A stretch of DNA of 64,000 nt, taken from NCBI GenBank assembly GCA_051294905.1, contig CM119381.1, positions 18,972,001 through 19,036,000 of the forward strand, given 5' to 3'. Source of the stretch: Botryllus schlosseri. Lineage: Eukaryota. The position numbers and the translations under genes were made by a program. This document shows, one piece after another, positions 3,501 to 15,500 of the stretch; positions within the stretch are counted from its first letter, which is position 1; the number at the start of each line of letters is the position of its first letter. A model generated the notes under the pieces. That model worked only from the letters and a program-made list of their open reading frames with translations. It was not told the origin of the DNA and did not search any database.

Positions 3501-6500
3501 ATATCTCACCAACCGTTTTTGGTTGGCTAGAAGGTCTACTCACCCACCAGTCTGCCACATACGAATGCTCATGGATACTAAAACAACAGATAACGTCCGG
3601 TGTCAGGATCCAACACTTCAAAGGTCCGCAAATTGAGTATATGTGATATATATAAGTTTACAGGAGGTGTTCCCAACCGGGAAGTAATTCTTCCCTGGGT
3701 GGTATTGTGATGACTTCAAGGCGTGGTTTCCAAAAAAATTTGATTACAAAGAAAATTTTGTCCATTATATATTTAGGGCCTCTGAATCTGGACTAGTAAT
3801 GCCAGAGGAGGCAAACTAGGTAATCTGGTAAACTTGGTATTTTTATTTCAGATTCTGGCTCTCCTTCAGAAATTGTGAGTGTTTTATTCCTTTTTGAGAG
3901 TCAGTTGCTAGTGAAGATCAGGTCAGCCTTATGCTATCACCGATTTCATAGACAGTTCTTTTGATAGTTTCCAAAAGCTATTACCTTAAATTATGGTGAG
4001 TTGGTATTTTAGAAAATACTGTAAAGCGAACGTATGATGTACTGGAACAGCAAAAACTGTACAGATGTAGGCGCTGTTGAGCAAAACTGAACTGCTTGCG
4101 TCTGACAGCTCAACACTCAACACACAAGTCACGCAAGGCTGCAATCTGGTCTGGTAGTGGCGGGCTTCTACTCAAATAGATCACTCACGTAGGGTACATC
4201 TTCTTCCTGTGGTCGGTGGTACATATTTATTTTAACCAGATTACAAGATTGACATGTTACTGGAATGAAGTGTCATAAAATCTCTGGAAATTGCTGTAGC
4301 CTACTATTACTGTATCATTTGCAGCAAGAACCACATCCACTTTCAGCGGTTGCTGCTTGCTGGTATATATTTGTGGAAAACAGGCTGCAAGATTGCGATG
4401 TTGCTTGAATGAGGTGTCATATAATCTATGAATGTTGGAGTACTATCATTTTATTCTGTTTTGTTCGCCGCCCGGTACGCATTGACCCTAGCTTTCATTA
4501 AATATGTCATGTCCATTGAAAATCGCGAAACATATAGAGTACGCATCTTTCACTGTATGCAAATTTTCACCTTCTTCCAGATAGCTCGAAATCGCTCACT
4601 GCACGGAATTTCGCGAATCCCATTGTCGTGGTTTTGAGAACTGTGTACTAAGTGCTTTGCGCCCAGTTTTAGTAATATGAATCTCTACAGGAGAGTGTAA
4701 AATCTAGTCAGTTAGGATTCCATCATGATGAGTTCGGATGAGTATATTTAATAAACTTGGATTATATGTTACCAGATGAAATTCTAAAGCGTGTGAATGG
4801 CATTGTGGTTCACTGTTACTACAGCAATGTGTTTCAAGTCTAGCGTAACTCAAAATTCTTTCCTAATGTCCATGCTCTTCAGCGAGTCCTGAAGTGCGCA
4901 GGCAGCGACTTACGGAAGCATAGAGGCAAGCCATGTTGAATTTGAGTCCATGGGAATCAAATTAAACATTCACACGAGCATGGTTTGGTTGGGTGACCGA
5001 TTCGGGCACAGTTTCATGTATAGAATAGAAAACTCAATGCTTTTTAATGCTGGCTAGTTTTTTCATGTTCTCGAGAATTATTTCCGAACATCCACCTCAC
5101 TCTCATATAGACACTTTCAGTCTGACATCTTCACTGAAATATTTACTTTATGGGACTGCGGGAATACTACGGTGCTAAAACAGTATATTAGAGCCTCTTC
5201 TCAAATGATGTATCCGTTGCGTAATAATGTTCATGTGGTAGGTTGTTGAAGCCTGTCCCCTGTAACCGCCTTCATAAACCACCGACTACGCGGCAACAAT
5301 GACGTTTCGATTCCAAATTTTATTCCTTCCGCTTAATCAGTTGCAAAGACGTTCTTGACGGAGGGGTGTCATGTTTGCGAGAATTATAACGCGTCGTAAA
5401 TTGAGAGAAAATAACGAATTCAAAAGGAACATCGTAAAAATATATGTAGTATATGTTAAACACGAAAACAATATAATCTCCAGGGTATCGTGGAGTGGAT
5501 GCGTGCGCGCGAAACGCAGCGGCATTGCACAGTGGTAGGTAATGTTCTTCGAATATTATTATAGATACGTGGCAATTGCACGCGGTCGTGCAATAGTCGG
5601 ATGAATAGCACCGCGAGTGATGAATATGAATTGTTAGGTTGGACTGTGGAACATATAATAACTGCGATAGCTCTTGATTCGTCGATCTTATCGTTGTTAC
5701 GTACTGGATGTCGCGATATTCTATTCTATTACTGCGCGTCCACCGGAGCCGTTGCTTACGGGTAACTTGCCGGGTACAGTTTCGACGTTGTCGAATTCGG
5801 AGTCCAAACCCACTACACCGCCGCTTGTGTCACTTGGTGGTATCGCGGGACCGCCATTCTCCATCCACTGCCTCCAGAACTCGTTGAGGTTGTCGGATTT
5901 CGTGCTGGAGCTGGATGTCTTGTTGCCGCTGGTCTTGTTAGACGAGATTTCGTTTTCGGAAGACGCCATGAAGTTCTTGTTGATGTCGTCCTTGCGTCGC
6001 TTTTCTTCTTCAGCCGCTCGCCGGCGCATTTCTTTTTCCAAGCTCTCTTCTGCAGCGGCTTCTTCCTCTTTCATTTCGTCGATTGTGGCGTCGCGTCGCA
6101 TTGCGGGCGTTTGGAAAATGTCATGCTGCCCGGCGACTGTTCGCGACATGATTACTTGGCGCGTCTGCGTTTGCATACTGTACGGCTGTTTAGCGCCAAC
6201 TCCTTGGCATGTCGCAAATCCTTGGTGTCTGTCTTCTTGCACAAGGTGAGCGCGTACTTCGCCTTCTTCGTCTCGTTCGCTGGTGACTCGAAACCTGCTG
6301 TCCATGATGAAGTCGTGACCTGGCGCGTCGCTTTTGAAGCATTTCGCGTACCAGCGACGCAGGAACTTTACGCAGGCGCATTTGCGGACGTACTCTTGAA
6401 ATTGCCTCTGCGTGAGGATGTACACCGCCGGGTTCAGAAGGACACTGATAAAACTCAGTATCCGCACCGCGGTGTTTAGTTGAAAGCACGTGAAGCCGTC

Positions 6501-9500
6501 TGCGCCCATCAGTGCCTGCGAAAGAAAAAGCGTTGGCTCGGATCGAAAGTTTGATTTTGCCTGTCGCTCATACTTCTGTGGTGTAGAGGAGGTAGGTGAT
6601 ACGCTGAGGTAGCCAGCACAGCGCGAAAACGATCACGTACGTCAGTAGCGTGCGCGATACGCGTAACTGCTTCTCCGCATTTTTGTGGACTATATTCTTT
6701 TTCCGTGATGAAGAATGGCTTCCTGCAAAAGTTATGAAACGATAGGTCATTGATTCTTAGTTATGTGATTCTTTAGTAAATATCATTTTACCTCCGGTAC
6801 TTCGCTTCGACGAGGAAGAAAGTTTTCTGCGAGGCTGAGAGTTACTGGAGTTGTTCGAACTCTGCCGGTTGTAGGTCGAGGTGTGTTTGTGTCCGTCGTG
6901 GTCGTGGTTTTCATGGTTCAGGCGTGAGTTTGACCTCGAAATCAACCACGTTGAGCTCGTCCGGTCTTCGTGCACGTTTCTGCTTGCCCCGTCGTGCGGG
7001 TAGGAGTATCGTTGGTCTTTCCGTGATGTCCCGCTTCTGCTGTGAATTCCGCTGTCTGTAGACGTGGTACGATGTTAATTCTGTTCCTATTTACCTCTAT
7101 TCAGGAACGGTACGGAGGATATCAGTGTCGAAGTGTTTTTAGCTTTTCGATGTATTCTAGTTAGTGTTTGACTACCCGCTCTACTCAATAGTTTTCAGCT
7201 TTTTTAGGCAAACCTATCCTTGAAATGCTTATAAATGTACTCAATTAAATGAAATCGCTACTGCTACTTGCACTTCATTCGAAATTTGCAACGTTACTTC
7301 TACTTGAGCGCCAACGATGACTACCTTGACCACCTCCGTCCGGGTAGGACGTATGTACCATACCTGGAAACTCCGGCGTTCCATTAGCTGCATGCATCCG
7401 TTGCTCGTGATCACCGCTTGGGCCTTGTTGCATTTTGCTCGGCTTCCGATACAGTTGTCTCGTGACATCGTTCAGCACCGTACTTTGTACGTAATTGATT
7501 TCGGCGCTCGGCGTACGCACGTGCGCGACTCTATCGTCAGCGTTCGGGAAAAAATGATTGTGGTACGGGCTCGCAGATTCCACGGGCGTGGGTGGTGTCA
7601 AAGCCGACGTAGTCGTAGCGGCCGAGTATCTCTTGTCGACGCACGGTATCAGTGAGGTCTGGTCGGTAGCCATGCTATCCATGGAGCTACCATACGATCC
7701 GCCGCTTTCTCGTCTGCTACCCGAGTTTCGCGTTAGCAGTCTAGTCGAATGCGTCGTCCGCGCGCTTGCGGATGTGCCGTCGAGTATACTCGAGCCGTTG
7801 CTGATCCTGAGCAACTCTTCTTCTTCGTTTACTCCCTCTGTCTCGAGAGGATGCTCCTCGATTGTTTGCGGGATGTTTTCGTTTGTGGAATCGTGGTACA
7901 GCGAATACTTCGCTCTTGTGTTACCGCTGCGCATGCGTACGTGGTTTGCGTGACGTGTCGCGTCGTCGGATTCCAGCCCCGGCGCCGCTTCAGTTTCCAA
8001 ACTTCCGTTGTCCACCGCGTTTGCGGTTTCCAAACACTGGTTGTTAGCTGCGGTGAGTTTCTGGTATCGGTGAAGGTTGTCAGAGCCTTCCGGTTGGTAG
8101 TTGGACTCTTCGAAACTGAGGGCTCCTGGCGATTGTGGCGCGTTCCTCGAAGACACGAGAACTGCCGCGTTTTGGTCGCTGTTGTCGGTAAACGACCTGT
8201 TCTCCACGCCGTCGTGTGGCTTTCGCAAGAGGACGTACCGCATGAAATCCGACATACGTCGGCTCATGGAGTCGGTGCGGCTGCTACGCTGGTTCGTCTT
8301 TTCCCTGAGGTGTATCGAATGTGCCGCGTTGCCGTCGGTGCTCGACTGGTTAGCGTGGAAATGGGTGGTCGAAGTCTCGCTCATGCTAAGCGACATCCTG
8401 TTGCGAACCCGTCGTCCTATCAGGCAGGCGATGGACACGTAGCTGAACACGATGATGGCGAAAGGCACGAAGAAACCCAAGGCAAGGTTGATCACGAGGA
8501 CGTATATAGTCGCGGCCCGCGACAGGTTGGGGTAACACATCGATTGCAAGCCGTCGAATTCGCTGAAATGCTTGACGACCGCCTCGGCGGTTGTCGTTAT
8601 CATCGTTCTGTACACTATGGTAGTCATCTTGACCTGTGATGATAATAGGAAATTAAGACCAGATCATGGTTTTTGTTGATATGTTTAGCACACTCATTAC
8701 CACTTTTTGCCCTTCGAAATGCATGGCAGCGTTGTAGACGTCTGTGTATTCGTCCAGAGGAATGATGTCTCCAATTTCTGCGTCTATTGTGCCGTCCCAG
8801 TCTTCTTCGTTAAGGAGCTCTTCCCAATCATCTCCGAGTAAGTCTGCCCCATACTGTTCGAGTAGGTCTTCGTCGTTGCCTGAAAAAACACGAAGCTAAT
8901 AATCCACGGTTGTGGTACTTCCTTCGTTTCCGATTAGGCTACCTGAAATACCGTCTAGTTCGTCCAAGTTCTGCGGTGCGTATGTTTCCTCGATGCTAAC
9001 GAGCTCGTCGAAGCACAAGTGAAGATTCACGTTGCCGTAGCTTTGAACGTATTCAGCGTTAGTTTCCTCCGCTCTCGCCAACAGCGTGAAGCACGCGTCC
9101 AAGACTCCCATGTCGGCGAAATAGTTCACTTTCTGCTTTTCATACGGTCGAGTTGTGACTGCAACAGTACATATATCACGTAAAAAGTTTTTCAAGCCAT
9201 CTTATAATAATGCCAGTACATACTTGACGGGGCGTTCCATTTGCTTCTGCAAGAAAAATGTGAACGTTACATTAGATTCCTCCAATGTGGATATTCTGTT
9301 ACTTTGCAAACAACTGATTGATGAGTTATGATTACCGGAAACCCCGTTTGTATCTGTACAGTACATGGCAACGTTTACGTGTCACACACGTTTAGACGTG
9401 CCGGGGCCTACGATATTCAATGAATGACGTGCTTACTCCTTATCATTACCAACAATGAGTTTACTTTGGATCAAAGTCGAAGAACGAATGGCTAATTGGC

Positions 9501-12500
9501 TATCGAATATAGTCTATATCGGTCGACCCTCTCATTCGGTTCAACCTTATCGGGTCAAGCGAAACTGCCCAGTGCCCACCCGGCAAGCAACGTGAAGCCG
9601 CCCGACCGCAACCCATTAGTTTTTGGCACAAGAAGTTATATTGATGTACATTTTACAATGATACACACCCTTTTGGCAACCCCACGCTGGTGTAGTTGGT
9701 CCCGGATCGCCGGTCATACGCCAGCAGAGTGTGATTTCCTTGTTGCCCGGCGGTAGGTAGGTTGTCGCGATTCATCACACGACTCAAGCTGTCTGGGGAA
9801 TCGCTCTCGCTAGCGATTAAATCGGGATTGACCATCTCGGGCATCGTGAACGCCAAGGCTATTATCCACATGACGATACTGATGCCGATGATAATCTTCC
9901 TCTGAAAAAAGGCATTTCGTAAACACAACATCATAGTATGGGAAGGACCTTTTGTGGATTATTGCCAATTGTTCATCGATGCACAAAATGCGCTTGCTGA
10001 TGATATTGATACGCGCGTTTGACTGCATTATATATGAAGACATTCATAATTCCTTGATGCACTCGTTTGTCATTCTACTCACGTCGTATTTATACCGTTG
10101 ACACCTCATGGACTTCCATACGGCCGCGCACCTTTCAACGCTCATGCTCGCCAGGAGGAAGATGTTGACGTAATAATGAAAGTTGTACCACGAGTTGATG
10201 ATCCGCCAAGTCCGTTGTTTGCTCGGCAAGTCGTCGGCAAACGTCGATATGTTGGTGGTCAAGTTCATGTCGCCAGCGGCATATTGAGCTGGGAGGCAAA
10301 TTAAAATGTGTTGAACTACACGTGCGCGGGAGAACGATTGACGTGTTCATAATCCAGCTGCAACGCCGCTGATACGATATTGCACCGATGCAAGGATATT
10401 GCATTGCGGTTATCAGATTGTTCCCTGTGGAATAGGTATTTCTTATAGGGCGATCCGTTTGTGTTATCATGAACTGGATGTGCGCACACTTAATAACACC
10501 AAACCGTTGATTGATGGGTGAATTCAAGTTTCCGATGCTGGCCCTTCCAGCCGACAAGAACGCGTGTTGGCATTACGTAGTTGCGGAATGAATTACCGCT
10601 TCGTTGACATCCACATACATCATACCGATTGCGTATGATAAAACTGTGCCTGAAGTGAATTTTCGACTGCGGCCGAAGCGGAATGCTATCGTCATGCAGG
10701 CTACTAGAATTCGCGAACGCCAGCGTTACTGTTTACACGACCAATATGTAATACAGATGGTTCACACGGCTACTGTAACTGTAATCCGACGTGCCTTCTA
10801 TCGTGAGATTTTCCGCCGAAAAATGAGCATTAGCATACCTCGCACGCTATCCGACACGGTCGTAAGAGTTTATGGGTAAACGTCGAATCTAGTCGACAAT
10901 TCGATTACGAATGGCGTCGGACTATCGTAAAACATCAATGCGTGCGTTGTATTCGGTATTCTCGAGATAAGCGCTGTCCAAACCGTGGCATCTGTTCATT
11001 TTATGGGTTTGTTTGTTCGTTGTGTGGATTGCACCGTTTCAACCCGTCTCGATTGCTAAAATATGGCAGGAAATTTTATCAGTACCGCATTTAATTTTCA
11101 TAGCACTGCAAATTTCTTAAATTTGTTTTGGAAACGATATCAAAGCGATAATGGTTCCCCTATTGGTAGTAACACTTGTAACCAGCGTAGTTCCGCGCTC
11201 ACATTTACTGAAAAAAAGTAATTTAATAGCGGGCCGCGAAGAATTTGTTTAAAACCAATATTTGTCTTTCCCTGCCACCCTGTATTATCGTCATGCATGG
11301 TGGGGCGCACGCACGTAAGTTATTGTGATGGGACAATAAGTGTGGAAAATGCGCTGCGCTGTGTAGACGGTTGTACGTGACTAAACGAAAATTAAAAAAA
11401 AGTTGTGCTGGCCGTTCCTCATTGTTCATTACGTAGATTGAAAAATTACACATTCGAAATGCGCCGTGCATGTCATCCTACGTGGTGTTGGAGATTCCCG
11501 AAGGTACTGGCAAGTTCAGATGTGTTCGATGCAACGCTCTTATCAGATACAGTTTTGCGGTTGCGTTATCGCCTTTTCGCCTAAAAACCGTTACAGATTG
11601 GCAGCGATGTCACCTTCTATTCGCCGTTAGCCGTGTTCCGGCGTCGTTATTTATCGTGAAGGTGCCCACGAAACACTGCCACGCGATCAATCTTGTTTCC
11701 TGCATTTTCATTCAAGCTTGTGAACTTTCGTCAAGTCGAGATTGTCAATTTTATCCAGAAATATGCGTCCTTCATCGCCTGCCGTCGAAATGTATTCGCA
11801 CGACCCTCGGGATCAGCCCCGTTGACAGATTGTAGCTAGCGAACCGACGGTACCGCAAACCACCCGTGACGAGGCTATATTCTTCGGAAGAAGATGGCTT
11901 AAGCCGAATGTGTTGCTGTCACTTAACGTTGCCCTGGTTTGCGTTGGCCCGGACTGGGGATTATTCGGATTTGAGCAAGGCGGTGTTGCAACCGCTGTGG
12001 TCTGTCAGCATTTGTTTCTTGTTCAATTCAAATATCTGTCCTTCAATCGCCCGAGTCCACAGCAGACCAACGGGTTCTGCCAGCGCATTTTATGGTTAAT
12101 TAAGAGGCGGTTGTTTTGGGTTCGTTCTGTGTCGTAACCCCACCGTGATGGTTAATGAATTCCTCTTTAAGAACACTCACCGTGTCATAAATGCATTGCT
12201 ACATTGGTTGTGGCATGCTTTATCGCCGGCTATGTGTGTCATAAACTGGAGGAGGTGATAACTTACCACTCGATTCAAACATTTCTTGCTTCATCGCGAC
12301 CATGTTGTGGGTCATCACGCTGTTGCTGATGAGCCATATTAGGCACACTAACAGGTCAGTCAGGGCGATTTGCACCATGTAAACTGTGTGAACCGAGTTC
12401 CGAACCTGCCGAAAGAGAGTTAGAATATTACACGGCGATTCCCAGGCGATATCGATAACCGCCGAATCAGGTGTCATTGGCCTCAGTCACCATACTGGTT

Positions 12501-15500
12501 ATACTTATAGGTTACATTTTCCAAGGATGCTCAGTCGAAATCCGAACTCCGAATTGCATCAGATTCCGCAGTATGCATGGGTTGAGGACTTCGAGACGCG
12601 CCGTGTTTTGTTTGGAGAATTTATAGACTTATTTAGATGACGCGACATTCTGATCGTATGACGTATAACCGAAATTATCATTACTTTGTTGTGTTCAGCA
12701 AAGCAGATTATAACATATCGGTACGCACCTTATCTTCAACTGTAGCCTAAGTCGTCATTGTCTTGGATATAGAGCGTTGGCAATGTTGGAAATTCCGCGT
12801 TGTTTTACTGCACCGACACTAACTATGTTCATTGTTCATGTTGTGGTTCTAGGTCTACTTTTTAACAAACCGACATTTCATCGATTACGGTGTGTAGACG
12901 AAGCAACACCAAAGTCCGAACTCTTGGCTCCAGTGGTGATTTACTGTGCCCGGATGTCTTTCTAACGGATCTGGGGTTATTCCCTGGTGTGGCGCGGTGT
13001 GTATTATAGGCAGCGTTTGGTGTCATCGAGCATCTATCATCTCATATCAGGTTGATACAGCGTAATGGTGCACGTTGCCTGCTTTGAAGTGCCCGCTTTG
13101 TTACTTGTGTCGCGTAAGTAGCTGTTATTATTAGTTGATCTGATTCGAAATAGCACACTCGACTATGGTTATTACGCAGAGTTCTCATTTTAAGCCCCCT
13201 TCAACGTTCTATTTATTGGTCCTCTCCAATCTACTGTAACTAAACCGGCGTGGTTAGTGTCCTCTTGAAGATCGGTGGTTACAAAATTCACCCAGCTGCC
13301 ATGGCCGTGGTCTCTTTTACGGTGAAGATTGTACTGTCACACTGGCACAGCCCTTTGTCTTTGAATTAGTAAGAAATTATGATAAGTGGCCAGACTGGCC
13401 ACGGTCCATACAAGCCAAAAAGCGTGAAGCATCGTCGATGTATTTTAGAAGTATGGACGACCGTTACCGATGCCTCCATACTCAGTTTTATCGTATAGCT
13501 TTTTGTCAGTTATGGTGCTCGAGGCACATTTCATGAAACGGCGCGTGCCAACTAAAATTAGTTCGGCCTCGTTCCGTTGTTTCTAACTATAAACCGTTTT
13601 AGGCTCGTACCAACCTGCTTTTTATGGAGCAGCATGTAGAGCATGATTGAATTCAATATCCCCCCGAAGATGCACATCAGTATTATTCCCACATGTTTTC
13701 CGATCAGGGTGCCGAAATACGCTTCCAGTTCTTCGGCGCTGGCCATATTCCACGTTTCTGTGTTATATCCAACTTCCGAGCATGTATTCTTCGTTGCCCG
13801 CTGGCCTGCCGGCTTCAACCCTACGATTAGACTTATGGACGGTGAACCTAGTAATCACCCATCGCGTAGATTTTCTGTGAATATGCAAAATTAGGAAATA
13901 TCCGTCTAATAACCACGTTTCGCGTGGTGTAGACAGCGTATAGTCTGCACAAAAAATTGAATCTTGTGGACTAGTGATCTTTCATTTTCGCAATCCCCAT
14001 CTACAGAATGCGGTTCCGACAACGGCACGATATGCGTATAGACGCCAAGAGAAACTCAAGCTAACTAGATCAAGCTCTCTGCCGTTGAAAAAGACGAATA
14101 GCCTGCGGTAATCCGACGCTTATCTCCCGTGTCTGTGGACAATGCCTTTCTCTTTTTCAATGCAGCGCAATGGCTCGAGACCTCAAGTGTATATACAATC
14201 TGATCACTCCGAAGCCTTTTTAACGCTTGCGTTGCTTCGCCTTTTTCCCTACTCTTACTGTATGCGAGTGCGAGTGTGATAGCGTGAAAGGCTTGAATGG
14301 GAAAACAATCTTATTATGCTTTGATAATATTTCTTTGGTAGCGGTGTGGATTTATAAATAACCAGCTTAAACTGATAAACTATCGCCATATACTCTATTG
14401 TGAAAATTTGTAAAAAGGCTCCCGTTAACGCTTCTGAAGTCGGAAAGATAGCGGCTGTAAATTGGAACAACCGCAGCACTTTTCTATTAATACATTTCAA
14501 TCGTGGACTACAGTATATGCGCAGACTTATGCTTCAAATACCGACCGTCGGTCGGTTTTGAATTGTTTAGCGCAGCGCATGCGATGACATTGCGTTTCGA
14601 CTCTATAAACTCCGCATCCCACATTCGTATACAATTGCTCCATTATGATATCAATTATGTAGCCTTTGTAACTGAAACTTCGCATTATTGACGTAATGCG
14701 TTTTACGCAGACTCGACTCTCCGATGACTGTTTTCATCTTTTAGAAATTTCATTATTTTATTTCTTCCCCTCCTCCGTGACGTCGCAGCCAAGCAACACA
14801 AACGGGATGTCTTCGCCCCACACAGCAATTCGAATATCGAATTCGAATCCAGTGTTAATTGCGATGATCCAAATCGAGTACTGTAAGACGATATTTTCAA
14901 GTATTGATATTATACACCCTTTTTCCCTAAGAGTGATATTTTCATGTGGAATTGTAGCTACGATGTTTCTTAGCCAACGCGGAAGCTTTTAAACTTAAAT
15001 CAGTCGTATCACAGCATCCAAAACATATAGAACAAAGCTACGCAAGTTCGTAGAAATGACATTTGTGAAGTTGTGATCGACCGACGGCATTGTCACAAAG
15101 TGCAATGGCATTGATATGGCCGAGAAAATACTAAACTATCTTTATGTGGTGTAGTGCTGGCATTATTTTCCTTTTAGTCGCATAACAGGTACCTATTTCT
15201 CAACAGTAGGGCGATTTTTTTTACCTAAAAACGGAAGATTTGCATCTAAAGACGTAAGATTTCGACATTTGTTTGACCTTAAAAATTTTGATCTCATGTA
15301 TGTAAATTAGGCGTTTTTCCACATAATGTTAGAATTGTACTACTGTTCTTCATTTCTGGTTGGAACTGTCTGTCCGTACGAAGTATAGGCCTGAAATATT
15401 TTTTTACTCAAAACTGACAAATTTTTACATGAAAAAAACTTTATTTTACCGAAATATAAACCTGCGAAGAATCCCAGTAGTTGGCTACATCACGCATTAT

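Follow-up and report, generated by a model that had tools for sequence, protein, structure and literature searches.

A large acidic second extracellular loop, part predicted helical module and part acidic insert, in the Botryllus schlosseri orthologue of the Ciona C3a receptor

The subject of this analysis is a 64,000-nucleotide stretch of the Botryllus schlosseri genome (assembly GCA_051294905.1, contig CM119381.1, positions 18,972,001 to 19,036,000; hereafter the window), which carries on its minus strand a class A G protein-coupled receptor (GPCR) with almost no N-terminal domain and with an exceptionally large, acidic second extracellular loop (ECL2). Sequence comparison points to this gene as the Botryllus counterpart of the Ciona C3a receptor, CiC3aR. 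The reading favoured here, to which we give a probability of about one half, is that its ECL2 joins a folded lid module to an acidic capture arm, the latter serving the basic tail of a ligand in chemotactic signalling. Among invertebrates, tunicates are the nearest relatives of vertebrates and, to our knowledge, the only group with a C3a receptor functionally tied to chemotaxis; Botryllus itself is a model for allorecognition and regeneration.

Hydropathy sets the fourth transmembrane helix (TM4) at about residues 162-180 and TM5 at about residues 421-439, so that ECL2 comprises residues 181-417, at window positions 9838-8511. Five exons (the 3' part of exon 4, exons 5, 6 and 7, and the 5' part of exon 8) contribute to these 237 residues, which include 22 Asp and 21 Glu against 7 Lys and 8 Arg, giving a net charge of -28 and an isoelectric point (pI) of 4.1. 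The 60 residues of exon 7 hold 11 Asp, 9 Glu, one Lys and no Arg; such acidity exceeds chance, as just 7 of the 8711 60-residue windows in the open frames of the whole 64-kb stretch reach 20 or more acidic residues. Several tyrosines of the loop lie in acidic motifs, namely LLEQY (Y326), LDEYTDVY (Y361 and Y365) and EETY (Y304). Y326 and Y361 each have three acidic and no basic residues within five positions on either side, Y361 falling inside D-E-Y-T-D, and a simple neighbour rule marks Y326, Y361 and Y365 as candidate sulfation sites. Sequons are found at N215 (NHT), N228 (NYT) and N412 (NLS). An earlier note, made by a model from the letters of the window, had described a five-exon acidic ECL2 of about 235 residues at 8510-9838, a 60-residue exon with 20 Asp/Glu and one Lys, these same tyrosine motifs and sequons, and a missing N-terminal domain: the span proves practically exact, composition and motifs are all recovered in the gene model, and the N-terminus of the receptor is only about 17 residues long.

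Splice-site enumeration and transcript contigs together define a gene of 11 exons (Table 1), with GT..AG at all ten introns and a product of 1201 residues. Rhodopsin-type marks are spread through the protein: an Asn in TM1, L-T-D in TM2, E-R-C where TM3 ends, CWLPQ in TM6 and NPAVY in TM7. The Pfam family 7tm_1 is matched weakly by single exons and is matched also by full-length relatives; the same single-exon search returned no Pfam match for the ECL2 exons. The locus is transcribed, with roughly half of the sampled words from window positions 5700-10350 occurring in many sequencing runs from the same organism. Three independent studies (X1, X2 and X9) supply transcript contigs that are collinear with the exons and contain every junction from exon 3 to exon 11, and the intervals that these contigs skip carry CT..AC ends on the plus strand, which is GT..AG on the strand of the gene. 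The junction of exons 3 and 4 (10083/9901) was seen in three runs, that of exons 8 and 9 is 7364/7055, both junctions of the microexon (9669/9246 and 9224/9158) occur in contigs of all three studies, and raw RNA reads of a further library (X24), few in number, display four junctions. The junction of exons 1 and 2 has homology with Styela as its sole basis, no read spanning it directly.

Acidic exon 7 is included in the assembled mRNA of the main isoform. The earlier note had named skipping of the acidic exons in cDNA as a result that would tell against its reading, and the contigs of the three studies retain them; such contigs show the main isoform and leave room for rare isoforms that skip exon 7. 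Differences between transcripts and genome fit purifying selection, being synonymous at 28 sites and non-synonymous at 11 overall, with five of five synonymous in the ECL2 exons; the single polymorphism seen in exon 7 is also synonymous.

Searched exhaustively with HMMER, exon 8 matched only 15 proteins. Among these are XP_039249644 of Styela clava (P0004; 1258 residues, without a given name; E-value 2e-78) and two proteins annotated as a 'putative C3a receptor', CAB3234986.1 of Phallusia mammillata and CAI84650.1 / NP_001072020.1 of Ciona intestinalis (P0011). Taken back to the Botryllus genome, the Ciona protein found exons of the window gene as its top five matches (E 7e-15 to 4e-6), with the next locus at 9e-4. 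No second locus for the TM3 exon or the acidic exon was found in the genome, the acidic exon matching itself only, and the TM6 exon gave weak matches to other receptor genes only (E 0.003 or worse). By these searches the gene is single-copy, and the reciprocal best match, together with the lack of a second locus, identifies it as the one-to-one B. schlosseri orthologue of CiC3aR. The large-loop, C3aR-like receptor of Ciona that the earlier note had mentioned exists, as CAI84650.1, and it is to this protein that the window gene is orthologous. Set beside a published alignment, the window protein resembles 'R1 Ciona intestinalis' (CAI84650.1) helix by helix (PMC7565592), and other published work treats the Ciona gene as a functional C3a receptor gene (PMC6707023).

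The receptors of Botryllus, Ciona, Phallusia and Styela are alike in their ERC, CWLPQ and NPxVY motifs, in a very short N-terminus and in lacking a cysteine at position 3.25. They are alike, too, in an ECL2 plan of a Cys-X25-Cys module, an acidic aromatic insert and Cys-Asp/Tyr-Pro ahead of TM5; in a huge third intracellular loop (ICL3) with RRMSDF and SGGS..SS.ES..TDQTS motifs; and in a conserved cysteine of the third extracellular loop (ECL3). In the comparison across the orthogroup the second of these ICL3 motifs reads SGGS..SS.(E/D)S..TDQTS, and it is present in the Botryllus receptor. The proteins nevertheless differ in size, with 848 residues in CiC3aR against 1201 in Botryllus, and ECL2 is about 155 residues long in the former and about 237 in the latter because of an extra 65-residue linker after TM4, common to Botryllus and Styela. 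Identity between the Botryllus and Ciona loops is only 18-25%, and the Botryllus insert, at -26, is the most negative of the family.

Alignments reveal one common plan of ECL2 in at least ten relatives. The loop begins after TM4 with a linker that varies, being short in Ciona and long in both Botryllus and Styela. Module A follows, in which the span from cysteine to cysteine is exactly 27 residues in all nine relatives holding that part, and after it comes a stretch of 87-126 residues, rich in Asp/Glu and Tyr/Phe/Trp and barely alignable, whose net charge lies between -14 and -26 in six of nine relatives. The loop closes with the helix of module B and an invariant Cys-(Asp/Tyr)-Pro-x-Leu-Ser leading into TM5. 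AlphaFold2 models, built from shallow alignments, agree with this division: in the full-length Ciona protein the predicted local distance difference test (pLDDT) is 77-96 for module A, 84-91 for module B and 49-68 for the acidic stretch, and in the Styela ECL2 modelled alone it is 92-95 for helices 77-104 and 118-142, 80-92 for helix 207-233 and 42-64 for the acidic stretch. Over both models, the counterpart of exon 6 reaches a pLDDT of 92-96 and that of the 5' part of exon 8 one of 84-92. On this difference between ordered helices (pLDDT 84-96) and an insert of low confidence (pLDDT 42-68), ECL2 is predicted to be a compact helical module, making up two thirds of the loop, that bears a flexible acidic insert, the part from exon 7 being probably disordered. 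The initial picture of ECL2 as a simple acidic loop gives way, on these models, to that of a largely folded structure.

The modelled Styela loop found no specific relative in the PDB with Foldseek (best E 0.66) or among the AlphaFold DB clusters (best E 0.14); a wide VIA-align search gave generic helical bundles at a best Z of 6.7, under that tool's noise level for helical proteins, and a feature search of the ESM Atlas gave no usable match. A new fold was considered and is not claimed, a three-helix module being too simple for it. Position 3.25 is Trp or Tyr across the family, namely Trp118 (10216-10218) in Botryllus and Tyr in Ciona. Two further extracellular cysteines are invariant, Cys409 (8535-8537), which lies 8-10 residues ahead of TM5, and Cys947 (6486-6488) in ECL3. 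The pattern suggests disulfides C267-C293 and C409-C947, the second an unusual bond between ECL2 and ECL3.

The favoured reading can be set out as a sequence of steps. The folded ECL2 module would lie over the ligand pocket as a lid or docking surface, in the role of the N-terminal domain that the receptor lacks; the insert, acidic and probably sulfated on tyrosine, would act as a flexible electrostatic arm that catches the basic tail of C3a or another basic ligand; and the captured tail would then be passed into the transmembrane pocket, leading to Gi-type chemotactic signalling in blood cells. For the Ciona receptor, Gi-type, C3a-driven haemocyte chemotaxis has reportedly been described, and Melillo and colleagues are said to have found in 2006 that antibodies against extracellular loops 1 and 2 blocked haemocyte migration toward a C-terminal CiC3a peptide. 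The C-terminal part of C3a is itself reported, in work of Pinto in 2003 and Melillo in 2006, to be chemotactic as a peptide in Ciona.

The presumed ligand is less straightforward to find. A search of the whole Botryllus genome with the Pfam ANATO domain gave no match above the cut-off. A published quantitative PCR primer for BsC3 matched C9:26001630 with one mismatch; the forward BsC3 primer had no genome match, probably since it spans an exon junction. About 20 kb downstream of the matched site, on the same strand, lie thioester-domain exons with the GCGEQ motif. Spliced in frame, three exons lead from an R-K-K-R processing site via an ANATO-like exon (19.1 bits, cut-off 21.4) to ...A-T-T-R and then S-N-F-E-E-S. 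The anaphylatoxin region of this probable BsC3 gene, C9:26013301-26015990, was seen to hold an ANATO-like exon with four cysteines, not six, and with the R-K-K-R site upstream. The putative C3a, as spliced in our own model, has 86 residues, a net charge of -3 and a pI of 5.2, and its last 25 residues are basic (+5, pI 11.2). Should this spliced model hold, attraction by the acidic loop would be limited to the basic tail of C3a and would not extend to its body. The cationic ligand proposed in the earlier note thus survives for the last 25 residues and not for the predicted fragment as a whole. Separately, thioester-domain (TED_complement) exons were observed at no fewer than eight loci on contigs C2, C3, C7, C9, C15 and C16, by which Botryllus would appear to have a sizeable C3/alpha-2-macroglobulin/TEP family; the account given here covers the locus at C9:26.0 Mb.

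Several points weigh against the capture of a ligand by a folded, acidic ECL2 of this kind. Firstly, the core of the putative C3a carries a charge of -8 within a whole fragment of net -3 in the spliced model, and with it the simple picture of an acidic loop seizing a cationic anaphylatoxin breaks down over the greater part of the ligand. Secondly, the insert is near-neutral, at -5 to +2, in three of nine relatives (P0009, P0012 and P0013). Thirdly, ECL2 is the fastest-evolving ordered part of the receptor, with an identity to Styela of 22-30% as against 65-79% in the helices. Fourthly, the membrane helices of the Ciona model are of low confidence (pLDDT 50-70), and both the placing of the module above the pocket and the pairing of the disulfides are inferred. 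Lastly, a second candidate C3a/C5a receptor of Botryllus has been published (PMC7565592) and is considered below.

Some of these points serve a different account, in which the acidic exon encodes a disordered spacer under little constraint that holds the module halves apart, aids solubility or displays glycans, and recognition falls to the folded module and the transmembrane pocket. The poor alignment of an insert ranging from about 87 to 126 residues, the three near-neutral relatives, the low confidence of the insert in both models and the acidic C3a core all speak for a spacer. Strong negative charge and an abundance of aromatic residues recur nonetheless in six of nine relatives despite turnover of the sequence, the sole exon-7 polymorphism is synonymous, and chemoattractant receptors usually capture their ligands with acidic, tyrosine-rich segments; we consider the spacer unlikely. 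A role of the insert in binding divalent cations (the Ca2+ or Mg2+ of sea water, or metals of tunic and blood), whether as a sensor or as a stiffener of the loop, strikes us as barely credible: Asp and Glu make up 33% of the exon and form stretches like D-D-W-E-E and E-E-D-W-D, but it holds no EF-hand or other known cation-binding pattern and no Pfam match, and the relatives give no pointer to metal sensing.

How the tunicate family relates to vertebrate C3aR was judged by profile scores, used in place of a phylogeny: a family profile of three full-length tunicate proteins was scored against solved GPCR structures. C3aR came first at 44 bits (E 7e-11), followed by galanin-1 (GALR1) at 36, P2Y2 at 35 and FPR1 at 33, and the pieces of C3aR matched by HMMER were TM1-2, TM3-ICL2-TM4 (ICL2 being the second intracellular loop), TM5 and TM6-7. 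Single queries were less uniform. CiC3aR alone again placed C3aR first, the Styela orthologue alone gave the top places to the nociceptin and bombesin-3 receptors and 4e-5 to C3aR, and the Botryllus TM3 exon alone had C3aR as its only solved-structure matches, weak ones at E 0.05. C3aR appears, weakly, to be the nearest solved receptor by about 8 bits, a margin too small for a claim of orthology. There was no match to the ECL2 of C3aR, the HMMER alignments covering membrane-helix regions only. C3aR keeps Cys3.25, which forms a disulfide with a cysteine where ECL2 begins, and its large insertion comes after that second cysteine. The Botryllus receptor lacks this arrangement: the tunicate proteins have Trp or Tyr at 3.25, and their loop cysteine stands behind the insertion, next to TM5. 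Of the C3aR-like architecture proposed in the earlier note, then, the large, acidic, tyrosine-bearing ECL2 holds; kinship with vertebrate C3aR is weak, with a lead of about 8 bits in the profile, no likeness in ECL2 sequence and no TM3 cysteine.

Because the two loops cannot be aligned, Cys3.25 is lost and the insertion lies before the loop cysteine and not after it, the large ECL2s of C3aR and of the tunicate receptors may be convergent. A stronger form of this idea, possible if doubtful, is that the tunicate ECL2 is an independently arisen, disulfide-stapled helical ectodomain with rewired disulfides (Cys409-Cys947) and an acidic capture arm; if true, it would be a second, convergent solution for reading anaphylatoxin-like ligands. 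In any case, the lack of the TM3 cysteine and the altered place of the insertion are relevant to the question whether anaphylatoxin receptors inherited their large ECL2s or gained them convergently.

The same observations may be taken further, to a tunicate-specific orphan receptor whose ligand is another basic peptide or protein (a neuropeptide, an antimicrobial peptide or a chemokine-like factor) and whose C3aR name stems from weak similarity. The C3aR lead of about 8 bits vanishes for Styela alone, the ECL2s are unalignable, Cys3.25 is missing, and an ICL3 of 459 residues with a tail of 230, both bearing conserved motifs, is unlike any anaphylatoxin receptor. The mRNA of the Ciona receptor is reportedly most abundant in heart and neural complex. 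Ciona GPCR surveys, for their part, contain no supported orthologues of the chemokine cluster (PMC2396169). On the other side, the family profile ranks C3aR first, the Botryllus TM3 exon matches only C3aR, if weakly, and the tunicate ERC...CQ resembles the DRC...CQ of C3aR. With the antibody-blocking experiments reported in Ciona added to these, an orphan receptor of this sort seems to us quite improbable.

The published Botryllus candidate is another gene. BsC3a/C5aR (MN053062, g020950; Peronato et al. 2020), a protein of 431 residues encoded in 6 exons, was found by BLAST with CiC3aR and proposed as a C3a/C5a receptor of morula cells (PMC7565592). Its identity with the window gene was considered and rejected: an 85-nucleotide piece of its exon 2 (PMC7565592, Suppl. 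Fig. 1) matches the genome with 100% identity at C9:15130781-15130865, the window lies on C11, and the two proteins differ throughout. They have in common their species, membership of class A and an enlarged acidic ECL2. BsC3a/C5aR aligns with Ciona R3/R4 and not with CiC3aR (alignment in PMC7565592), and a genome search with CiC3aR does not retrieve it at E<=0.01. Its exon for TM2-TM3 scores best against CXCR4, CCR6, CXCR1/2/3 and the somatostatin-3 and nociceptin receptors (E 2e-8 to 5e-6), with C3aR at 8e-5; by this single-exon test, the locus (C9:15129281-15132365) looks like a general receptor of the chemokine/somatostatin cluster. Two further gene models of Peronato et al., 'R2/R3' (g25017 and g29610), have six helices and no big loop, and are sister to Ciona R1 (PMC7565592). 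Judged by these comparisons, BsC3a/C5aR is not the orthologue of CiC3aR, and the window gene is. The Botryllus complement field would then have studied a receptor other than the CiC3aR orthologue, and expression and knock-down work on Botryllus complement signalling should include the window gene.

Table 1. Exons of the receptor gene, in window coordinates, with the part of the protein that each encodes.
Feature	Position	Strand	Content and basis
Exon 1	13615..13746	-	Start codon, 17-residue N-terminus, TM1 (residues 1-44); basis: open frame, GT donor, alignment to Styela N-terminus
Exon 2	12267..12405	-	TM2 (LTD motif), start of first extracellular loop (ECL1); contig loose ends at 10289 match its 3' end in sequence
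Exon 3	10083..10288	-	ECL1 (NLT, NIS sequons), TM3, Trp118 at 3.25 not Cys, ERC motif (E142-R143-C144)
Exon 4	9669..9901	-	TM4 (9901-9839), then first 56 residues of ECL2 (9838-9669) with NHT, NYT sequons
Exon 5	9224..9246	-	23-nucleotide microexon within ECL2 (residues 237-244); required for frame
Exon 6	8943..9158	-	ECL2 module A, Cys267-X25-Cys293, predicted helical hairpin; contains EETY
Exon 7	8701..8879	-	Acidic Tyr/Trp-rich insert, residues 317-376; LLEQY, LDEYTDVY
Exon 8, 5' part	8511..8633	-	Module B, predicted helix; conserved Cys409-Tyr-Pro-Asn-Leu-Ser (NLS sequon) just ahead of TM5
Exon 8, remainder	7364..8510	-	TM5 (GFFVPF), first part of 459-residue ICL3 with conserved motifs; Pfam 7tm_1
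Exon 9	6792..7055	-	Ser/His-rich end of ICL3; in frame; detected via transcript contigs only
Exon 10	6574..6722	-	TM6 (CWLPQ)
Exon 11	5722..6515	-	ECL3 with conserved Cys947, TM7 (NPAVY), C-terminal tail of about 230 residues, stop codon

Beyond the loop, the gene offers some observations of its own. The 23-nucleotide microexon (9224-9246) is read in a frame that differs from the longest open frame around it. ICL3, at window positions 6792-8430 on the minus strand (residues 447-905, about 459 residues), holds conserved blocks and is not mere filler: RRMSDFMRY..LLRKP, NENIPQTIEEHP, RRESGGSYGSSMDSMATDQTSL and SALTPPTP are near-identical in Styela and in other assemblies and are partly kept in Ciona, and by their sequence they look like phosphorylation or docking sites. 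The C-terminal tail has a block of its own at 5832-6086 on the same strand (residues 1081-1165), an acidic/basic TIDEMKEEE..EESLEKEM..DDINKN followed by a Ser-rich run and F.EFW..W, which is common to Styela and occurs in reduced form in Ciona and Phallusia. Among the X24 reads, many at 5700-6320 and 6792-7103 have their first mate on the plus strand, as against the minus strand for reads of exons 7, 8 and 10, and loose ends accumulate at 7011 (6 reads) and 6126 (4 reads); this pattern could reflect an unstranded library of few reads, an antisense transcript or an indel allele.

A predicted folded module joined to an acidic insert delimited by an exon should allow clean constructs for how a receptor that is devoid of an N-terminal domain reads a protein ligand, and such constructs may be placed beside better-known systems. 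With vertebrate C3AR1 the Botryllus receptor shares its membership of class A, an exceptionally large, acidic, tyrosine-containing ECL2, the signature (D/E)RC...CQ of TM3 and ICL2 (DRC...CQ in C3aR, ERC...CQ in tunicates) and a ligand, here a putative one, whose C-terminal tail ends in Arg. It differs from C3AR1 in that part of its ECL2 is predicted to be a folded module, in an ICL3 and tail that are hundreds of residues longer, and in a gene with 10 introns. With chemokine receptors and C5aR1 the likeness lies in the proposed principle only, that of a flexible, acidic, tyrosine-rich segment which captures the basic part of a ligand ahead of its entry into the pocket. In those receptors the segment is the sulfated N-terminus, whereas in Botryllus it would be an exon-sized insert of ECL2, and the resemblance, if it holds, is one of mechanism alone.

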